A stretch of DNA of 34,331 nucleotides from Lenisia limosa (taxonomy: Eukaryota > Protista > Breviatea): positions 1 through 34,331 of the forward strand of contig LPNZ01008459.1 in NCBI GenBank assembly GCA_001655205.1, written 5' to 3'. Within the stretch, counting starts at the first letter, position 1. Each line of letters opens with the position of its first letter. The notes beneath the pieces are model-generated. The model saw only the letters and a program-made list of their open reading frames with translations. It was not told the origin of the DNA and did not search any database. Position numbers and translations under genes: made by a program. Shown here piece by piece: positions 4,450-34,331 of this stretch.

Positions 4450-6315
<1,866 letters not shown>

Positions 6316-6623: not shown

Positions 6624-9600
6624 ATGAAGTAAGTTATTATGAATTTATAGTATTTCTTATGTAATAAACGGGAGCTAATCTCCTTTAGCTTTGGAGACAG
6701 ATCTCAAGGTGGTGGAAAACCTCGCTCTTTCGGTCTGCTTGGGTTTCCCTTGTTTTAATATTGATTTTTAAGATTGTTGTTTCGAGAATATTCCCCTTTT
6801 TATGGGTTTACCACTCGATTGCAGTCATTTTTTATTCAACATAAATATATGTTCCTCTAAAAGCTCAGGGAAGCTTAGTCCCTATAGTTGTTAATGATTT
6901 CGTTCCGAAGGATAACTCTCCTTTCAGCTCGTGATGAAGGCAGATCCCTCTTTGTTGGCGGCAGTCATGAACTAGAGTCACTCAGACATTTGTTTGCTCA
7001 GTATGGCGAAATTGAGCAGATTGTGGTATGATGGTGGTGAAGCATGATTTCAGGAATTAGTAAAGAGTTATATGATAATGGTCTCTGTTCTTTGCTGACA
7101 CACAAGCAAATGCAAGGGTTTGGCTTCGTGAGTTACTGCACGAAGGCGGATGCTGATCGTTGCGTTCGGGAAATGCCAAACCTCCCGGAGATAGCTAGCA
7201 CACGAATCAGAATGAGTATTGCTGAACCTCGCAAGCAAAAGGTTCGGAGCTACATCTTTAATAATGAAGAGGTTTCTTTAAATTCATTCGCAAACTAAAT
7301 CTTTGTTCATCACGTTTGACCGCCTAGCCTCCTGGAGGACCACAGGGTTTCAACCAAGGTGGCCAGCAGGCACCACAAAGCATGCATCCCGGAGGATACC
7401 AACCCCGTAATGAACGCTTCAACCAGAACCAGCCCAGGGTATTCTTCTTTTAATTTTTCACTTTTTAAGAGCAACAATACTGGATTCCAATCCCTCGATG
7501 ACACTGAGAATGATCGTGGAGGAAACTATGGAAATGGTTTGTGTTGGCACTTGCTTCAATGAAACGAAACACTATTTACTCTTCCAGACATGGCGGGAGT
7601 ACCAAGAGCCGATATTGGTGGAAGAGGAAACAAGATCCAACCCAGAAGCGTGAGTGGACTAAAATGCTTCAGGGTCAGTTATTTGAATTAACTCATTAGG
7701 GTGCCAAAATCGATAACCTTGTTGAACCACCTTTCGCTGATGCCCCCTCTGGTTTGCTGAGATATTATCTTATTACCAGCATTTTTTCCTTCTCTTTTCT
7801 TACAATTGCATTATTACAGAATTTAATCCACCATCCCACAGATTCTGATATGGCCGGACACATTCGAAGGGTAGCAGAACACATTGCTACTTCGCCGCCG
7901 TCTTTGGAAGCCAAAATCAGACAACAGCATGGCAAGGATGAACGAGTTTGTCGGGGGTGACTCTTTCAAACAGGGTTAACTCATATCCAGTTTGGTTTCC
8001 TCAACGCTACTCATCCAAACCATGCCTACTTCAAATGGGTGGTGTACGCAATCAAGGCTGGAGTACCCAAGGGTGCGCCTGGATGTTTAGATATTTATGT
8101 GGAGAGTCATCTAGTTTTACTTTACTCTTTAGATGTCCGACCTGCATCCCAACCCATCCCTCCTCCTAGCCAGGCACCGCCTCAGGTATGCCAACATTCC
8201 TCAGAGCGTCTAATATCGTAGAACGTACCGCAGTACCACGACCAGTCTCTTTTCATGCAGCAGCTTGACCAAGCCAACCCTCAGTCGTATGTGGACTTTA
8301 TCACAAGCTTATTAGTTTTAGTGCATTCCCAGGCTCTATGGCCCCCATCCAACAAGTCTCCAAATCCCTTCCTGTTGAACAGGTAAATTTTCTGATGCTT
8401 TAAAATACCCCTCGCCCTCCTGCCTCGTTTTGCTTTTCTTCCTTCTTTTGACTATGAAGCCCCTCGCTCCCCCTGTCGTTGAAGAGACTGCCGAAAACTC
8501 TGTTGATCCTCAGAACGTTTACTGGCTATTCAGCCAAGAAGAGCTGGTAGGTTGCGTCTTCTCTTCGTGTCATTTCTGGCACTTATTTTACCGATGGGCA
8601 AATATGAACTTCCCACAATTTGACTCATTGATTAGCCACCATGCGGCCCCAGTATCCCCTTCGAGGAACAAGAGGTGTTGAAAGAGTTACTTCGCGCTCT
8701 CAGCGGCTCAAGAAGCTCAATCGCTGTGGGCCCTCCCCTGTTGCTTTCTTCTGTGTTTATTCAGCTAATTACCCAGGCTGCCAAGAACTATATGTCAGCA
8801 CATGAGGAAAAGAGCGCAGCAGTGGCAGCGTGTTTGAGTGAACGAATGGAGGAAGTAGCGTCTGCGCAAGAGAGATTGCACGTCATCTACGTGGCAAGTG
8901 ATGTGCTTCATCATCAGTGGGGCGAGTCAACTCTCAACTATTCTCCTCGGGGCGTTTTTTCTTAACTCTTCCAGGAAGCGTAAAAATCGTTTGAATGATC
9001 CGCTGAAGCTCTGCATTGAGGTAAGTGCCAAGACCTCCATTGATTGCTCACCCAATAGGCCCATTTGCCGTTCCTTGTCGGGTGCTTAGTTACGGCTTTT
9101 GACGTGACTGAAAAACACAAAGGTGCCTTAGAAAAGGTCAGTTGGAAATTCACTCTTATGACATGTACCTACCTTCCGCCCATATTGACAGTTTCTCTAA
9201 CCAAAATAGGTTCTTCAAATCTTTGAGAATGGTCTTGTGGGTAAAAAGCGATGCGAGTTCCTTAGGGCTATTCAGAGCTTCCAGGTGAGTGTGTTACAGA
9301 GAACCCCCCTTTCTGTTGCACCCCATTATTAATATCTTAGGCCACCGCTCCCGTTTCCCCGCCCGTTATTCCCCTCGTTAAACCCGCCATCAAGAAGGCC
9401 AGTCCTTCGGATCTCTATGAGTAAGCTCACTTTGTTAGGAAGTCATACTGACCGGGCTTTGTCCGATATTACTGTCGCAGACCCTCAATGCCAACATATG
9501 ATTCGCCACCCGCTCAAGACTTCCCCCAAGGTCCCCCTGGCTTCTCCAATACACAAAGCTTCAACAACCCCCAGCAGTATGGCAACAGCGACTTCCCCCC

Positions 9601-11954
9601 TCCCCAGGTTGGTGTAGTCGTAATCTTACAGCCCTTCTCCTCCGATATTTTCTTTGATCCCCTAGTCTTTCAACCAACTTCCTCCCCAAACCTTTAATCA
9701 GGGCCCTCCCGGGTTCCCTCCGAAGCCACCCCAGTCCTTCGACCAGGTACGTGAATAAAACTTTTTTCTTTGGTAATTGTTTTGTTTTGTTTTGTTTTAC
9801 TTTTTAGCCACCCCCCGGATACAATCCCTCCCAGCCGCCACCCGGCTTTGACCCGTCTCAGCCCCCTCCAAACCAGGTAATGCAACGAACACTACCCGGG
9901 TAGATTTGAATTGACACACTCATTGAATTCGAATTTCTTATATTCCACAGCCGCCACCATCCTTCGATCCCTCGCAGCCTCCGCCGGGATTCAATCCTAA
10001 CCAGCCACCTCCCAATTTCAATCCTCAGGTGCGTTTAATTGAAATCTTCTCTTTCGTGTTGCCTCATATTCATGATATAGTTCAACCAGTTCAACCCCCC
10101 GCCTCCTGGTCAGGCTCCGCCAGGCGATTCGTGGTCTGACAAGCCCCAACAAAAAGTACGTCTTATCTCTTACTCACCCCCAAACTGCTAGTTTTTTGTC
10201 TGACCCCTCAGCCACCCGGTCAGTACCCCCCCTCCAATTATGACGGACCGTCTCGAAATCGCTTCGGCCCCAAAGTCGATAGCGCTATGGATTCGTATGT
10301 TCTGTGATCACTTGATCATTCCTTACGTGTTTGGACCAAGTTGACCTTTGTAGCAATCAGCCCCGGTCGCACCCCGACCGAGCCAGTCGGTTTCAGACCG
10401 ACCGTTTAGGAAATGACATGCCACCTGGCGGCTTCGATGACCGAGGTTCATTTAGCGGGCGTGGCGGTCGCGGCGGTCGCGGCGGTCGTGGAGGCAGATT
10501 CGGCGGCAGGGGAGGCCGCTTTGATCGTGGTGACAGAAACGACAGATTTGATGACCGAAATGATGGTTTCGATGATCGTGATAGAAATGATCGCTTTAAC
10601 GATAGAGACAACTTCGACAGAGGAAATAGTTTTGACGACAGAGGGGGACTTTTTAATCGTGGTCGTGGCAGAGGTTTGTTTATTTGTTTAGTTAAACTGA
10701 TTTGACCGTATTAGGTCGAGGAAGAGGCCGTTTTGATAGCTTCGAAGATAGGCCGAGACGTTTTGATAGAAATGACAGAAGTGACAGATGGGATAACCAG
10801 CAAAGGGATCGTCGTGATGGCTGGGGAGATAGAGATAGACCCCCTCGCGGCCGTGCTCCTGAAGATGGTTTGTTGATGCCAATTAAAACGAATACTGACC
10901 CCTCAGACATGGATTTCGACTCCCTCACCGGGCGGAATGTCAACCGCGAACGCTCAATGTCTCTTTCACCACCACCTGCCCAGGTTTTTTTTAGTTTTTT
11001 TTTTTTAGGTTTTTCTGCCTTATCCCATTGTATCGTTCTTACTACCAAAGCTTACTATCTAGAACCGTAGAAGAAGATCACCTAGATCTCGTTCACCATC
11101 ATCCGTGTCAAGGCGGCCAGACAGACTTGATGATGACTCTCCCCCTGAATGTGAGTCCCTCCGAGCTCAAACTCACATCCTTGTTATCACAAATGAATAT
11201 GTAAATCCTACCCAAATTGTGTTTTTCATCATGTTTTAGCGCCAGTACAATCGAGTGCCCCCAAAAGCCCTATTGGTAAGCACCAGTGATTGTTTTGACA
11301 AGTCATCTCCTTTTTACTTTGCAGCATTACCCGCTGCTGCCCTCTTGCAACCCTCAGGGAAGTCTGTCGACACTAGTTCTGAAGTTAATAGTAGGCTTAT
11401 TGGCTGCTGGAGAAGGCTTACCCTGTAGTCCCCATCCCTCTGATGGAGAAGGAAGTTCCCCCTCCTGACTTTAACATTGAAGACGCCCTGGCACAGGCAA
11501 AGGCCATCGCAAGCAAGGAGCTGGTTGGCTCTTCTTCTTTGAATACTGTACCTTGTTTGCTTTTTTGACTGTGAAGGTTGAAGCCCCTGTGGTGGCGGAA
11601 CCAGCTGAGGAAAGGCGAGCTGCACCCCTTTTGCCCCCTGGTATGCGCCATGTCATGTTATGGAGGGTTATTAAATAAGAATATCCCAACAAGTTATGTT
11701 TTACAGAACTTTTGTTCTCTTGGGGCAATAATAAAGATAAATTTTGCGCTCGGTTTCGGTTCTATTCGTACTAAATTTTGATTGAGATCTGTTTTAATAG
11801 TACTCTTTGTTTTTGTGATTAAAAATCAGGTGTTGCACCAGTTTCTTCAGTGCCACCCCTAAGAGATTTGGAGTGAGTTTGGGGAAGCCGATCACTTTCA
11901 ATTCTTTTTTGTTGCAACTCACCTTTTAGTGATGAAATGGAATTGTCAGATTAA
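6624..11954 (+). CDS. CHERP-like RNA-processing protein: RRM + SURP/SWAP + CID + Pro-rich + RGG/RD-rich + RS-like tail
   Basis: RRM with RNP2 SLFVGG and RNP1 QGFGFVSY. SURP: HIRRVAEHIATSPPSLEAKIRQQH...FGFLNATHPNHAYFKW. CID: SIAAAKNYM...ERLHVIYVASDVLHH. These are followed by PPP(G/S/N)FxPxQ repeats, RGG and RD repeats, and RRRRSPRSRSPSS. The last exon gives ...RDLDDEMELSD* (TAA 11952-11954). The 5-nt first coding exon is ATGAA. Confidence 0.8.
10463..10489 (+). repeat. Coding 9-bp tandem repeat (GGCGGTCGC)x3 encoding RGG box
   Basis: Seen directly, translated as RGGRGGRGGRGGRFGGRGGR. Confidence 0.9.
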
Positions 11955-13037: not shown

Positions 13038-13696
<659 letters not shown>

Positions 13697-27100: not shown

Positions 27101-28953
27101 GATGCTTTTGTTCACCTCTTAGTTGTTGCTGGAGTGATTGGAACCAAGAAAGTGGCTTATGATCTTTGGGGAGACGCCGTCAATACCGCATCAAGAATGC
27201 AGTCAACGTGCGCCATTGTTACTTCACAACATTCTCAATTCCTTGAGAGTTTTAACTTTTTAGTGGTATTCCAGGCTACATCCAAGTGTCGTACTCCTCT
27301 TATTCCTACCTGAAGGATATTTTCCTCTTTGACAGACGAGGGCCTATTGCTGTAAAAGGCAAGCGGGGTGAACTGTAGCATCTCAAAAGTCAGAATTGAT
27401 AAGTAAAATCTAACCCCCCCCCCCCCNNNNNNNNNNNNNNNNNNNNNNNNNNNNNNNNNNNNNNNNNNNNNNNNNNNNNNNTTATTGATGATGAGACTGG
27501 TCAGAGGTACTCAGACAGGAACGGCAGGTTCCTTTGGACAAGAATCGGCTCACATTTGAGAAACTGGTGAGCTTCAGGATAGTATTTAGTTAATCAACGA
27601 AACTGTCTAATATTCAGGTGGGAGTATTTGGAAGATATTTCGAACCGAAACGACAAAGATGACAACGTGACCCCTCCAGCAATTTTGAGAGCAAAACAAC
27701 TGTGAGTTAGGATCCAAGGTGAATGATTAATTGTCCAAAATTGCACGTTCTCACGAAGTAGTGAGTCAACCCAGCGTTTGTCTGCGCCACGTAAGGGAAC
27801 CAAAACGGAGGTGGCTATCAAGCCGGACTCCCCAGAGCCTTTTAGGTACCCATACTGCTACACCACACTGTGTTACATATATCAACTCACTAACCTCCCA
27901 AGGTTTGGTAAAACGAAAACGCGTCAGAATGCCACCGGATTCTGTCTTGGAGAACAGGAAGTTTCCAGAGTGGGGGGGGGGTACACTTTGGGCTTCACTT
28001 CAGTTCGAAAAAAGCTTTCTCGATAAATCCTTGAAAATTATCGATATTTTACTTGTCTTTTTCGAGCTAAAGTGAAGCCTTACCTACACTCAATACCAAG
28101 AGATCACTCCTTTAATGGCAACCTCTTATGAGACAGGCAAGCAGTAGACGAAAGTCTTTGGAGCAGCGAACATCTGTGTTTGATGAAGGTTTGTGCTACT
28201 TCGGAGGTGGAAATGAACGTTTACCACTACAGATCGACTCAGACAATCACACAGTCGATTGGAAAGGGCAGAGGAAATTGAAACCAAACCCAAGGTAAGA
28301 AATTCTCATTGTTTCTGATCTTTGGGTTAAAAGTTATTGTCTTCAATAATCACTTTTTTTAGAAGAAACCAGAGGTTCCGGCACACACACGGCTCTATGT
28401 TGCCCCGCCAAACATAAAGCCAAAGGTAGATAGTCCACTATATCAAATCCAAAATCTTTATGCATTGAGTGCCATTACCCATCCCCAGAAAAAGGCAGTC
28501 AGTGGTGCCGAATACCGAACGCAGCTGCGCGACCGTCTGAACGACCTCGTTTTAGCTAGTGTAGGCCGCATTTTCATATTTATGTCATGACCCTGCAGTC
28601 GCCTGGGGTGCCGGCGGACTTTAAGGCATCGCACCGGCCGCTTGTGGCCAAGTCCACCAGGGCACCGTCAGCGGCTTCCAATTCCCGGCCCAACTCAGCC
28701 ACCAAATCTTTCAGGCCGGCATCGGCAACCAGGTGGGTGGCGATCTTATGATCTTTGATCTGATATTGAAGAAAAAAGGTCCCTCCTCCATCCTCGGCAC
28801 CCCTCAGTCGGCCAAAGCCAGTCCGGGCCAAGTCGCGTGCGGTCGAGCCATCCAGTAGGGCATTTGGACATATATGACCCTTGTCTTTCTTCCGCTCTAT
28901 TTGGGAATGCCGTTCACCGTGTAGATGACCCTGTTGATATGGACGATCTGTAG
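24195..28953 (+). CDS. H-NOX(HNOB)-like + HNOBA/PAS + class III nucleotidyl cyclase with adenylyl-type specificity residues; long disordered C-tail
   Basis: H-NOX-like helices [25 protein letters not shown]...[12 protein letters not shown]...[33 protein letters not shown]...LMLRGRLM. Signalling helix [21 protein letters not shown]. Cyclase [64 protein letters not shown]. The last exon gives [10 protein letters not shown] possible extra exon at about 24094-24148 means the start may be upstream. Two N-gaps lie inside the gene. Confidence 0.88.
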
Positions 28954-29436
28954 TGGGTTCTGATCACCCTAATTGTATCATGGTTTTGATGTGTTTTCTT
29001 GATGTATACTATTTGTTTCACTGAAGGTTCATAAGAGTTTGAGTGATTTCTGTTGTGTGCCTGCTGTGTGTCTGCTGTCCGTGTTCGACGTTTGAAGTTT
29101 GCCACTCCACTAAACAACTGTATGTAAAACTGTAAACCCCAGGCAATCTAGGCAACCAATGGGCAACAAAAGGGTTCCTGACTGGCTCCTATACGCTCCT
29201 ATTATTGCCCTCCTCACATTCACATAACTGGAACCCAGCAACACAGATCACTCAGATCATTTATAAAAACGGCCGGATTTTTTTTTTTTTTTTTTGAGGA
29301 AGAANNNNNNNNNNNNNNNNNNNNNNNNNNNNNNNNNNNNNNNNNNNNNNNNNNNNNNNNNNACAAGGAGAAATATTTATGGTTTAAAAAGCCATTAAAC
29401 GCAGTATCATACGCTCGGTTTAATTATATCATCAAG

Positions 29437-32400
29437 ATGCTGAGACACGTTTCTCAAAGGATGCTCCTTGTCTTTTTGGCACTCTTTATGACGTTACAGG
29501 TGAGAATACGAAAATGTGGAATGTTTGGGTTGTTTATTTTTCTCAATAGATTTGGTTGTCTCAAAGAATTTTCCCTTTGCTCCTTCTCTCACTGTCTATG
29601 GCCATTGCATATTCACAGATTTTTCTAAATAATAATAAAAAAAACAAGTTTGTTCAGTTTAATCCCTTAGATCTCTAGAGCTGTCAAGATTTCCAACTGG
29701 ATTGTTCAGGTTTGGCTTGGTCTTGCGAGGGTTCCACACAGGTCCATATTATTACATTGACTAATTACATATATATTTTGATAGTTTGATAGTTTCAAGA
29801 TGATCGCTTCATAACAGCACATAGTTTGCTCGCTATGATTGCTAAATACGTCTGTAATCATAACACACACGCAGGACTTTGCATTGAGAGATGACACCGC
29901 CACACAGCCTTCCATGACATCTGTCGGACTTACTGGTGCGATGATTTGCTTTCCCCATGTCATCCTTTGAACTTTCTCATCACTGTCTTCTCGTGGAATG
30001 GCATCTGATGACATAGGAACGGGAGTGACAATGGGACTCGTGCATAAGGGTGTCGACCACAACCACTGCATGTTCACAGACGATAACGCACCCGGTAAGG
30101 CAACGAAGGATTGATGTTTTAATTCTCCAGCTCCTTTCCAGAAGAGAGCTTCCTCTGGCAACCCCTCCATTCACAGAAAAGTAGGAAGGTTTTCTGTATT
30201 ATTTAAGAGGCTGTCATCTATTGGTGGGAATCTTACACCCTAGTTTTCCAGCTATTTAGCCGTCGGAGACACTTCGGACGAATATAATGGAGAGGGGACC
30301 CACATTGCCTCCATTATGACGGGACATACCAGGTTTGACAATAAAGAACTCACATACTCTCGCTCCCTTTTCTAGTGCATCTAGTCTTGACTCCCTTTTC
30401 ACACTCTAGAGCATCTAGTCTTGACTCCTTCAATGGAATTGCTCCTACTGCTTCTGTAAGTTTTTACTGCTTTGCTGTCAAGTTTACTCTCAAGCTTGCC
30501 GTTGTCGATGTTGCTGTTGAGGATGCAGTCAGCTCTACGGAGGCTGAGAAGGTCACTGTAAGCATTCTGGATTACTGAATGCATAGTCTTACACTTTTTA
30601 CTATCCAGGAAAATTTGACTAAACTCCACTCTGCTGGCGTTCGTGTTACTCTGTAGGATTTCTATTAGTAAATTGATAAAGACGGGTAGATATTACTTTT
30701 GAGTTCCTGATAACCTTAACCTCTTCCTACAGGCTTCCAGAATTTGTTGATCAAGGTTACGGAAAAACGTCGGTTGTTACTCAGTTGGATAATGTGGGTG
30801 GTGGGGTGAGGACAGCTTGCTGTTGATCTGACCGCTTTGACATTTCAGTTCATCTCCAACAACCCTGACCATGTTGTCGTCGTTTCAGTTGGGTCCCACG
30901 GCCCCTTCAACTCTGGTCTCAAGTCTCTGGGTAAGTCCTACGGTTCCATGCCCATCTCACCGTGCAGCTAACTCAAAGAACGCTATCGTTGTTGGCACTG
31001 CCACTGGTCTTGCCTCTACCACCTACGGTTTGAGTGCAGTGTGGTCCTACATGATTTACTTGAGTTTTCACACCCTAGGCGCCGACTTGTCTGTTTCTGC
31101 AGTGAAGGACCAAGTAAGCCGCATAACATGCTATCTTTTTTGGTATCAATCACTCATCGTAATCGTAATCTCATGCCCTTCACTAATCGTAATCGTAGCT
31201 CTGCCCCATGAATGTCATGCCCTTCAATGAGGAGTTTTGCAGTTCTTTGGGCGAAACTACTCCCTGTGTAAGTGCAACTGNNNNNNNNNNNNNNNNNNNN
31301 NNNNNNNNNNNNNNNNNNNNNNNNNNNNNNNNNNNNNNNNNNNNNNNNNNNNNNNNNNNNNNNNNNNNNNNNNNNNNNNNNNNNNNNNNNNNNNNNNNNN
31401 NNNNNNNNNNNNNNNNNNNNNNNNNNNNNNNNNNNNNNNNNNNNNNNNNNNNNNNNNNNNNNNNNNNNNNNNNNNNNNNNNNNNNNNNNNNNNNNNNNNN
31501 NNNNNNNNNNNNNNNNNNNNNNNNNTGGGCTGCACTTCAGAGATTCAGCACGCCGCACTCCGCGTTTGGTCTTCTTCCGCCCGCGGACCCTCTTTTGATG
31601 GCAAAATCAAGGTGTGCTACCGGGGCTATCCACTCTATTTCTGCCTGGTTTACCATTACAGCCCGACATGATTGCGCCAGGCGTAAACGTTCGCGCAGCC
31701 AAGAGTCTTGGACTTCGCAGCGCAGCGTCCGCTTCTTGTACTGAGGTATGTGGGTTGCCGGGTGGAGTGGTATTGCTTTAAACGTCTTTACCTCCAGGAC
31801 GACCTAACAACACACTCCGGGGGTGACGTGGCAGGAGCGGCTGTTGCCGGCGCTGCGGCAATCGTCAAACAGTACTTCAATGATGGCTTCATGGAGACTG
31901 GTTTGTCAGCCCTTTAGAACGCAGAAGTGACCCTTCAGGCATCAGTGGAGGAGCATCAGTCAGTGCTTCCGCTGCCCTTGTCAAGGCTGTTCTGGCTGCC
32001 GGTGCCACGGGGCTTTACGGACCAATTGCCCTCCATCAAGGGGGCGAGTATGTCGAAACTCCCATCAACTCAGGACACGACAACGAGCAAGTGAGCGGCA
32101 GCGGGATGGGGGATGGGCTGTGTTGGAAGATTTGTTTCTCTTTAAAATTGTATTGTGGAAGATTTGTTACTTTTTAGGGAGCTGGTCTCATCAACCTCTC
32201 AAAGTCTCTTCCCCTTCAAGGTCAGAAGAGGGGCGGTGTGTTTTAATGTGGCGTGTATCTTTGTTCAATAATGTGTTTCGATGGCCAAAATGTTCCCGTT
32301 ATCACGCCTCAGCCCATCGTGCTAGTGGGGCCTCCCCCTTTTACTACGTCACCTCCATTGGAGCTCGCCAAATTAAAACTGCAGCCAATTTCACTGTGGG

Positions 32401-34331
32401 AAGGGGGTTGAATTATTTTTAATAAAAACAGAAACAAGATAGAAATTTAGGACCATATTTCAGGTAAGGTTTATATTAGAGCCTGAAGTCCCTATTTGAC
32501 CTTTTTAAGGCATCATCAACTGGGGCAGTTCGGGTGGTGGTGGCCTGGACGGATGCGACCACTGCGTCGGCCAACATTGTAAGCCATGCTGCTTCTTGCT
32601 GACAACTGACTTCTCCAGCCTCTCGCAGCTGACTTGGACGTTACCATTTGGAGCGACTCTGATTCCACCAAGTACCCCATCAACGCGGTAGAAAGCCCTG
32701 AAACCGGTCTCTACTCCGATTCCGTATGCCTCTTTTTTCCATGTTCGCATAACTCCATAGGTCAATAACATGGAAATCGTCGACTTCACGGCCAAGGCTG
32801 GTGTGACTTATGAGATCCGTGTCCACTCCAGTGACATCGGTAAGAATAGCTCTAGTTGTCTTATATCATATTGTCATATTAATCGTCTACAGGAAGCTCA
32901 GTGACCTTCCCTGTTGTTGTCGTTGGTCGAGACCTCACCTTCAACGTTATTGACACGGACACCACATGCAGCATTGCGACCTGGGGCGAAGACTGCGGTG
33001 AGTGGCAAGTCTTTCTTCTCTCTTGAGGGCTCGTTTGACTCTTCAGCCAAGTCAACCTGTATCGGCATTTGCGCCAATGGTGGAGTCTGTGAGGCTGGTG
33101 TCTGCCAGTGTGTTTCCGGCTTCTCAGGTATGCCTTCAGACCTGAAGTGAAGCAGCTGACACCCCAGGTGCCAATTGTGATGTTGTGCCAACCTGCTCTC
33201 TCACTTCGCAATGCAATGACGGCACGTGCCTTAGCGGCGATACCTGCCTCTGTTACAGCGTGGGGGGGGGGGGNNNNNNNNNNNNNNNNNNNNNNNNNNN
33301 NNNNNNNNNNNNNNNNNNNNNNNNNNNNNNNNNNNNNNNNNNNNNNNNNNNNNNNNNNNNNNTGATATATATATATCATAACTACATGACATACATATAT
33401 ATATCATATGATATGATATATAGTATGTAACCAATACAGGGCTTTGGCAACTTCTGCGACCAACTCCAGAACTCAACGTAAGCTTTTTTTTGTGCTTAAT
33501 TGGGTGAATGCAGTTTTTAAAACAAATACTTGAACAAACAAAATCATCCGAATCACTAAAGCTCCAGAATGGCTACCCAGCTGTTTGTCCCCAATGGAGT
33601 TGACATTGTCGTCACAGTTGATATTGTAAGTACCACATGTACCAATGACATTTCAGCCCATGAGCCACGACCGAACCTTTGTTTTCCATGCCCAAGACAC
33701 GCAACCGACAATGCCGGATACCAAGGTCGGAGCCGCAGCGATCATAGATCTGATATTGACTTTTCAGTGGACCCTCAACGGTGTCGGTACTTTCAGCAGC
33801 TCTTTTGTAACTCTTGACAAAACTGGAGTATTAGGGATGTCACTTTATCTGGCCGGCTGTTTTTTTTTCTTACAGTTTCAGACGATTCGCCACATCATCG
33901 ACAACACAGAAGTGACAGGCACCACCAAATTCCTGACTGTTGTTGTTGCAGCTGGAGACTATGGTTTGCCTTCTTCAACTGTCTCGAACATTCTTTTGGT
34001 TCTCACGGAACACTATATTTTTATGGATTTTTGATAATAATCCCGACAGGACAGCTCCATGTTGGCCAATCAGCCCTCAACAAACAATGCTCATTAATAG
34101 GAGCTACTGGACAGGCCTACCCCGTAAGTCATCACACTAGCGTATTACGTTGACCCCCCCAGTGCCCTTGTTCCACTGGGTTCACAGGAGACCGATGTGA
34201 CACCTGCGACACGGGCTACTATGGTGACGAGTGTCAGTACCAACACGGCTGCCCGTCAACGTACAAGTGTGTAGTAGTACTATTATTCAATACCTCTTAT
34301 AAGCGTGGCCTTGTATCATTTCTCCTTTCCA
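29437..34331 (+). CDS. Secreted KP-43-type subtilase (S8) homologue with substituted catalytic triad, beta-barrel domain and EGF-like repeats; 3'-incomplete
   Basis: Signal peptide MLRHVSQRMLLVFLALFMTLQ. S8 scaffold motifs GLTGTGVTMGLVHKGVDHNHCMF, NGEGTHIASIMTG, NGIAPTA, VVVSVGSHG, ANSKNAIVVG, SSARGPSFDGKIKPDMIAPG, SGGDVAGAAVAGAAAIVKQYF. KP-43-like C-domain VVVAWTD...DLDV...VNNMEIV. EGF-like CANGGVCEAGVCQCVSGFSG and CPCSTGFTGDRCDTCDTGYYGDEC. Confidence 0.87.
30363..30428 (+). repeat. Local tandem duplication of a 3' splice-site region
   Basis: The exact 18-mer GCATCTAGTCTTGACTCC occurs at 30377-30394 and 30411-30428. Each copy follows a pyrimidine tract ending in CTAG. Confidence 0.85.
33363..33427. 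repeat. Intronic AT-rich self-complementary tract
   Basis: Palindromes TGATATATATATATCA (33363-33378) and ATATCATATGATAT (33401-33414), next to an N-gap. Confidence 0.8.

Follow-up and report, generated by a model that had tools for sequence, protein, structure and literature searches.

A probable pseudoprotease head of the subtilase fold on an EGF-repeat protein of the breviate Lenisia limosa

What does a subtilase become when every residue of its catalytic machinery has been exchanged and its fold has been kept? This question is raised by a forward-strand gene in a 34,331-nucleotide stretch of DNA from Lenisia limosa (contig LPNZ01008459.1; hereafter the window), a eukaryotic sequence with very short GT-AG introns and 12 gaps written as N. 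An initial annotation, made from the letters alone, had recognized at 30017-31900 a scaffold of the subtilases (peptidase family S8) in which the catalytic Asp, His and Ser read His, Glu and Asp and the oxyanion Asn reads Ser, and it had offered two ways to understand this, either a new metal-binding or two-carboxylate site, or a secreted or surface pseudoprotease combined with epidermal growth factor (EGF) repeats. Our analysis of homology, transcripts and domain order favors the latter: it is reasonably likely that the gene is expressed as a large extracellular protein with EGF repeats, headed by a pseudoprotease domain that would act as a binding or structural module.

All four replaced codons are present where the initial annotation had placed them: CAT at 30043-45 is His (MGLVHKGVD), GAG at 30292-94 is Glu (EYNGEGTHI), TCC at 30894-96 is Ser (VSVGSHGPF) and GAC at 31825-27 is Asp (HSGGDVAGA). 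For comparison, 120 prokaryotic loci were fetched by a degenerate GPT.DGRIKPD pattern, which is unrelated to the triad, and a local hidden Markov model (HMM) was built from 29 canonical prokaryotic S8 domains among the open reading frames (ORFs) of these loci. The spliced window protein used for the profile searches, which follows the exon model described below, scored 101.7 bits against this HMM over profile positions 30-351 of 368, and the best of 2000 shuffled versions of the same protein reached 8.3 bits. The parts lying before and after an assembly gap at 31281-31525 scored 48.0 and 57.1 bits separately and are consecutive and colinear on the profile, in agreement with the subtilase scaffold seen at the outset. 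In the alignment, the window His stands under the D of 'DtG', the Glu under the H of 'HGThVag', the Ser under the N of 'aGNeG' and the Asp under the S of 'GTSmatP', columns that are nearly invariant in the 121 S8 ORFs compared (D in 76/79, H in 105/105, N in 112/114 and S in 118/118). Thus, the aligned positions hold His, Glu and Asp in place of the Asp-His-Ser triad and Ser in place of the oxyanion Asn (Asn155 equivalent), and the four replacements are confirmed as real, far beyond chance.

Membership of the S8 family, or subtilase fold (PF00082), rests on this local full-length HMM, and a KP-43-like guide protein from the prokaryotic set (L102/P0008) scored 141.9 bits on PF00082 itself. Single exons, which are short pieces, gave no Pfam hit and either no match or a marginal one in the PDB. 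Two exons nevertheless carry a signal of their own: the one holding the Glu codon (30244-30332) weakly matched the His motif of aqualysin-1, and the language-model look-alikes of the one holding the Asp codon (31798-31900) were S8 clusters. A search of the window by tblastn with bacterial S8 proteins matched exactly the exons within 31528-31745 and found no second S8 copy in the window. The identity of the window protein to prokaryotic S8 proteins is about 23-29%.

The distribution of kept and lost residues is uneven. The comparison has 46 columns conserved at 70% or more, 10 of them predetermined by the pattern used for fetching. In 27 of the 46 the window protein agrees, mostly at structural Gly, Ala and Pro residues, in GIAP and VG, and along the GP.DG.IKPD..APG block. 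Its losses are concentrated around the active site, where the four catalytic positions are joined by the equivalents of Thr220 (the Thr before the Ser) and Pro225 (the Pro four residues after it), and where the substrate-binding strand of the 'NSWG' type reads LLPEF, with the equivalents of Ser125 and Gly127 also lost. Judged from this pattern, it looks like the fold has been kept and the whole catalytic apparatus released from constraint. Replacement of the nucleophile, the general base, the Asp and the oxyanion Asn together rules out canonical serine-protease chemistry, and the initial statement that the protein is not a serine protease holds. From the same residues we infer that all peptidase activity was lost.

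To what extent the gene is expressed and correctly joined was examined with contigs from two public runs of one study, one of DNA type and one of polyA RNA, mapped to 28400-34331. The DNA run probably comes from the very sample that was assembled and so gives no independent check of the assembly; the RNA contigs come from a separate library. RNA depth over the S8-like gene is modest, about 2-8. At the Glu, Ser and Asp codons, no base differences between the polyA RNA contigs and the window were reported. For the His codon there is a DNA contig only, as the RNA contig starts at 30049, 4 nucleotides (nt) downstream of it. This RNA contig, 678 nt long, gives eight GT-AG joints, namely 30093>30130, 30180>30244, 30330>30408, 30455>30495, 30557>30609, 30652>30733, 30793>30849 and 30929>30967. 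The exon model of the S8-like part is as follows.

29437-29499 (ATG, hydrophobic N-terminus), 29550-29651, 29679-29741 and 29875-29935, forward strand: tentative 5' exons, prediction only, from an open frame and GT-AG ends.
30017-30094, forward strand: exon of the former Asp site with GLVHKGVD and the His codon at 30043-45; profile alignment, donor at 30094/30095 equal to the RNA joint.
30131-30180, forward strand: 50-nt exon adding PFQKRASSGNPSIHRK between the Asp and His motifs; RNA joints, frame kept.
30244-30332, forward strand: exon with NGEGTHIAS and the Glu codon at 30292-94; RNA piece 30244-30330 with identical letters, profile alignment.
30410-30455 (NGIAP), 30495-30557, 30609-30652 and 30733-30793, forward strand: four exons, among them the strand reading LLPEF; every boundary an RNA joint.
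30849-30930, forward strand: exon with VVVSVGSHG and the Ser codon at 30894-96; RNA joints, profile alignment, codon check.
30968-31027 (AIVVGTAT strand), 31079-31113 and 31199-31279 (Cys-containing insertion LCPMNV...CVSAT), forward strand: exons following the joint 30929>30967.
31541 (or a start within the gap) to 31611, forward strand: post-gap exon with RVWSSSARGPSFDGKIK; S8 profile alignment, predicted GT-AG.
31662-31745, forward strand: exon with PDMIAPGVNVRAAK...; S8 profile alignment, predicted GT-AG boundaries.
31798-31900, forward strand: exon with HSGGDVAGAAVAG and the Asp codon at 31825-27; RNA 31804-31899 joined to 31938 with identical letters, profile alignment.
31939-32090 and 32178-32220, forward strand: exons of the S8 C-terminal lobe, ending in GAGLINLSKSL; RNA piece 31938-32090, profile alignment.

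Introns of the S8-like gene measure 36-114 nt with GT-AG ends throughout the model (36 and 63 nt for the two that flank the 50-nt exon), and the tentative 5' part includes a GT-AG micro-intron of 27 nt at 29652-29678. The exons 31079-31113 and 31199-31279 were placed by length: to account for the 678-nt RNA contig, the exons from 30968 to 31279 must add up to 176 bases, and they do so exactly. An intron at 31114-31242 combined with a donor at 31267 was considered and discarded, since this alternative misfits the length of the RNA contig and would create a TAG at the post-gap acceptor. The reading frame is open across about 900 codons and about 30 exons of the model, with no stop or frameshift seen. 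An open frame of this extent and correctly spliced polyA RNA with the same bases bear out the earlier view that the gene is not a decaying pseudogene. The exons first proposed needed correction against the RNA: the exon at 30131-30180 and the coding sequence in the gap had been missed, the stretch 31199-31279 turned out to be coding, and the exon starting at 32619, which had been ended too early, is extended by an RNA contig to 32723. Near the 5' exons, several DNA contigs share their sequence up to 29647 and then diverge, one of them joining to 33393; an A-rich repeat near 29647 probably confuses the assembly.

The gap at 31281-31525 lies inside the S8 region. It is written with 245 letters, and the one DNA contig that spans it shows a true length of 166; because this single contig spans the gap, both sides lie on one molecule and in the same orientation. 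Past 31279, at a point where the window reads G, the RNA departs from it; the 21 nt that follow in the RNA are absent elsewhere in the window and read in frame as ICNDTIP, seven codons without a stop. Therefore, at least 21 coding bases are hidden in the gap, which also holds at least one intron boundary; a splice donor is probably located at 31280. It is possible that the frame closes into the post-gap exon, for example through one intron of length 1 mod 3. By profile alignment, the gap corresponds to a variable-loop insertion that follows the 'VGA' strand and precedes the 'SSRGP' motif, and no catalytic position is hidden in it because it aligns to this insertion. An exact 49-mer adjoining the gap had no match in the metagenome collection. 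Some of the window's gaps are flanked by poly-G or poly-T runs, for example at 33263-33273 and 29270-29296.

What stands behind the S8 core was read from the prokaryotic relatives and from Pfam. The best prokaryotic relatives are KP-43-like, and the guide protein matches PDB 1WMD at an E-value of 1.4e-76. By phmmer, the window protein is colinear with the guide through the C-terminal lobe of the S8 domain and a jelly-roll (L102 residues 461-712), with the jelly-roll motifs VRVVVAWTDAT..., DLDVTI..., VNNMEIV... and GVTYEIRV aligned, so that the jelly-roll follows directly after the S8 core as in the KP-43 type. The jelly-roll is followed in turn by EGF modules. A laminin-type EGF domain (EGF_laminin, PF00053) scores 24.5 bits at 34154-34330, above the Pfam cut-off of 21, and EGF_2 and hEGF score 19.9 and 20.5 bits at 33049-33126, both under their cut-offs. 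The transcript runs beyond the window, since a loose RNA end at 34266 reads on as ...NEETGECTCS; RNA depth is about 4 over 33548-34331. The features of this part are listed below.

32313-32395, 32510-32578 (VRVVVAWTDAT), 32619-32723 (DLDVTI...), 32761-32839 and 32893-32997, forward strand: jelly-roll exons, colinear with L102/P0008.
33047-33127 and 33168-33262, forward strand: EGF-like exons; Pfam scores under the cut-offs at 33049-33126.
33274-33362: second gap, written with 89 N and really 48 letters; spanning DNA contig.
34163-34268, forward strand: laminin-type EGF exon; Pfam scores, RNA.

The longer form of the exon 32619-32723 is the one supported by a third RNA contig (32619-32708). Within the longest intron of the model, 32396-32509 (114 nt), an AG stands directly before GTAAGG at 32463/32464, and this intron could therefore be two abutting introns or contain a recursive splice site. 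Between the EGF modules, at about 33568-34017, there is a beta-rich stretch of about 120-130 residues with no Pfam match and an RNA depth of about 4. In the model that begins at the ATG at 29437, whose first exons are predicted ones lying outside the RNA contigs, the hydrophobic N-terminus is separated from the S8 core by about 50 residues, which would leave no room for a subtilase propeptide; in this model, a hydrophobic N-terminus is present and the propeptide is probably absent.

The architecture can be compared directly with that of KP-43-type subtilases (the Bacillus sp. KSM-KP43 enzyme, PDB 1WMD, and SubHal, PDB 5FAX; S8A), which show the same order of an S8 core and then a jelly-roll. 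Both share the L.W.D ... DLD ... N.E.V motifs of the jelly-roll as well as the structural glycines, GIAP, VG(A/T) and SS.RGP..DG.IKPD..APG. Unlike the KP-43 type, the window protein has all four catalytic residues replaced, has lost the substrate strand and Pro225, carries a Cys-containing insertion, probably has no propeptide and is fused at its rear to a eukaryotic EGF stalk. The features by which a pseudoprotease is recognized are found together here: homology of fold, loss of the catalytic residues, and a gene that is open-framed and expressed as spliced polyA RNA. The KP-43 jelly-roll followed by EGF and laminin-EGF modules fits the secreted or surface pseudoprotease that the initial annotation had proposed as one option.

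In the reading we favor, the gene would encode a large secreted or surface protein of this breviate, whose N-terminal head would be a KP-43-type subtilase domain that lost catalysis and retained its fold and jelly-roll, with the EGF and laminin-EGF stalk behind it. The head would serve recognition of a ligand or partner, or adhesion, at the cell surface in a non-catalytic manner, and the His/Glu pair at the old Asp and His positions may keep a buried polar pair with its polarity swapped. The extracellular location is one that we infer. Most likely, this is a known kind of protein and not a proven new enzyme.

Several points weigh against this reading. The 5' exons are without RNA support, as no RNA contig lies across 29192-29983, and the same applies to the exons at 31528-31745, where none lies across 31370-31765. 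The frame was read on either side of the gap at 31281-31525, with closure across it a possibility. No orthologue or paralogue was found in the searches reported below with which the four codons or the domain could be compared, and the binding role would be assigned to the head by analogy with other pseudoproteases.

The main other rival sees the gene as a relic without function, one copy of a duplicated S8-EGF gene, drifting after the loss of its activity while its transcripts are still spliced and polyadenylated. Such a relic, which we hold to be unlikely, would agree with the loss of all catalytic and several neighboring conserved residues, with the modest RNA depth and with the absence of an RNA contig over the interval that includes the post-gap exons, and the gap could hide a defect. 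However, drift without function fits poorly with about 30 exons free of stops and frameshifts and GT-AG ends at every model intron, or with the retention of structural Gly, Pro and hydrophobic positions and of the jelly-roll; moreover, several of the replacements are two or three base changes away from any canonical codon, suggesting that the sequence diverged over a long time and kept its open frame throughout. That the odd codons or exon joins are errors of the draft assembly has an almost negligible probability. The 12 N gaps and their wrong lengths (245 against 166, and 89 against 48) speak of a draft, and the DNA run shares its probable sample with the assembly, but the RNA of a separate library is identical over the Glu, Ser and Asp codons and confirms splice joints, and it is not credible that separate errors of several bases each should have hit precisely the four catalytic codons.

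The other two alternatives would keep the site at work. One of them supposes that His, Glu and Asp converge on a metal ion or a new acid/base centre, through which the subtilase fold would gain a new catalytic function or metal-dependent binding; we consider it distinctly unlikely. In its favor, all three replacements are classic metal ligands at positions that, by homology, are in contact in S8 structures (an established geometry of the family), and none of the four positions became an inert residue of the Ala/Gly type, unlike in the dead S8 proteins of bacteria. Glu in place of the catalytic His also has a precedent in clan SB, since the sedolisins (S53) have Glu at this position together with a retained Ser nucleophile and an Asp as the oxyanion residue. 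The likeness to sedolisins ends there: the window protein has Asp at the Ser position and Ser as the oxyanion residue, and a Ser-Glu-Asp triad is not formed. Against a new centre, no relative with the same residue set was found, the loss of the Thr220, Pro225 and Ser125/Gly127 equivalents fits a general decay of the site, and bacterial homologues that are plainly dead, with Ser changed to Ala, have the same Glu in place of the His. Slimmer still is the chance that the His/Glu/Asp set, with the oxyanion Ser, would prove to be a selected metal-binding or carboxylate centre conserved in breviate orthologues, with a new chemistry or a metal-dependent recognition of ligands as its function. The remaining alternative, a peptidase that works by other chemistry or other residues, either by a Glu/Asp mechanism or with a nucleophile in the gap or the insertion, is very improbable. 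A general base of Glu is tolerated in this clan, as the sedolisins demonstrate, and the insertion between 'VGT' and 'SSARGP' is partly unread; on the other hand, the nucleophile position holds Asp and no equivalent Ser is present (a Ser does lie three residues upstream, but canonical SGTS motifs have it as well), changes affect both the oxyanion residue and the strand that binds substrate, and the gap aligns to a variable loop.

Relatives with the same residues were sought in several collections. The longest exon (50 amino acids (aa)), compared with 1.84 billion cluster representatives, gave low-complexity matches only, none of them homologous by local phmmer, and it seems that the organism's own protein and its close orthologues are absent from this cluster-representative library. 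The search with the KP-43-like guide protein returned close Chloroflexi relatives and no eukaryote among the best 120 of 6902 matches. With a 60-aa read-through piece no related loci were found, and three ORFs of the window had no record in the contig index. When the metagenomes were scanned for GEGTHVAG, three distinct bacterial S8 homologues (L201, L121 and L162/L195) were obtained at 87-146 bits, in which the His position is Glu, the Asp is kept, the Ser position is Ala and the Asn is replaced by Asp or Lys. From these residues, they are apparently dead subtilases. They share with the window protein the Glu at the His position and the replacement of both Ser and Asn, and differ from it in keeping the Asp, in having Ala and not Asp at the Ser position, in being prokaryotic and in their architectures. 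Thus, of the residue set for which homologues were to be sought, the exchange of His for Glu recurs in bacteria, while the full His/Glu/Asp set was not seen again among the cluster representatives, the guide matches listed and the GEGTHVAG scan. The bacterial homologues show two architectures, one of about 1000 aa and one of 499 aa with a hydrophobic C-terminal segment; that of L201 lies at 7472-10483 on the reverse strand of its locus.

Non-catalytic subtilase folds with a biological role are known from two other systems. In Clostridioides difficile, CspC and CspA are described (PMC7200643; bioRxiv 10.1101/461657) as subtilase folds with incomplete triads that act in germinant sensing and regulation. 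They resemble the window protein in having a subtilisin-like fold with missing catalytic residues, and differ in being bacterial and intracellular in the spore, in belonging to another S8 lineage, in retaining the prodomain and in having no EGF stalk. Plasmodium PIMMS2, a subtilisin-like protein of the ookinete surface that lacks the HGT and GTS motifs, is regarded as a pseudoenzyme that takes part in interactions between cells or with tissues (PMC5520436). Like the window protein, it is eukaryotic and secreted or surface-bound; unlike it, PIMMS2 is apicomplexan, SUB1-like and not KP-43-like, and carries a transmembrane segment instead of an EGF stalk. In the P. berghei protein the D/H/S-equivalent residues are retained, and other orthologues vary.

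Pseudoenzymes of protease folds are increasingly seen as receptors or regulators, CspC sensing bile salts and PIMMS2 aiding tissue invasion, and the window protein would add to them a eukaryotic KP-43-type pseudoprotease on an EGF stalk. That it would do so in a breviate is of some weight, as breviates are of interest for the origin of the animal-type adhesion machinery and live with epibiotic bacteria. If the His/Glu/Asp set were conserved and bound metal, the locus would present a rare serine-protease site turned into a different centre; the data as they stand describe a complete, apparently old loss of catalytic residues in an intact, expressed gene.

Other genes of the window were noted in passing. 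Upstream of the S8-like gene, a forward-strand gene at 28423-29020 encodes a Ser/Pro/Ala/Arg-rich product, with introns of 38-70 nt confirmed by RNA. The RNA contig of this gene stops near 29020, and its depth of 13.6 is above that of the S8-like gene. Two ORF fragments resemble familiar proteins by eye, one at 5049-5360 on the reverse strand a GET3/ArsA-type ATPase and one at 13206-13559 on the forward strand the ribosomal protein uL15 (L27a), and both would belong to the ordinary housekeeping set of this genome with its many introns.

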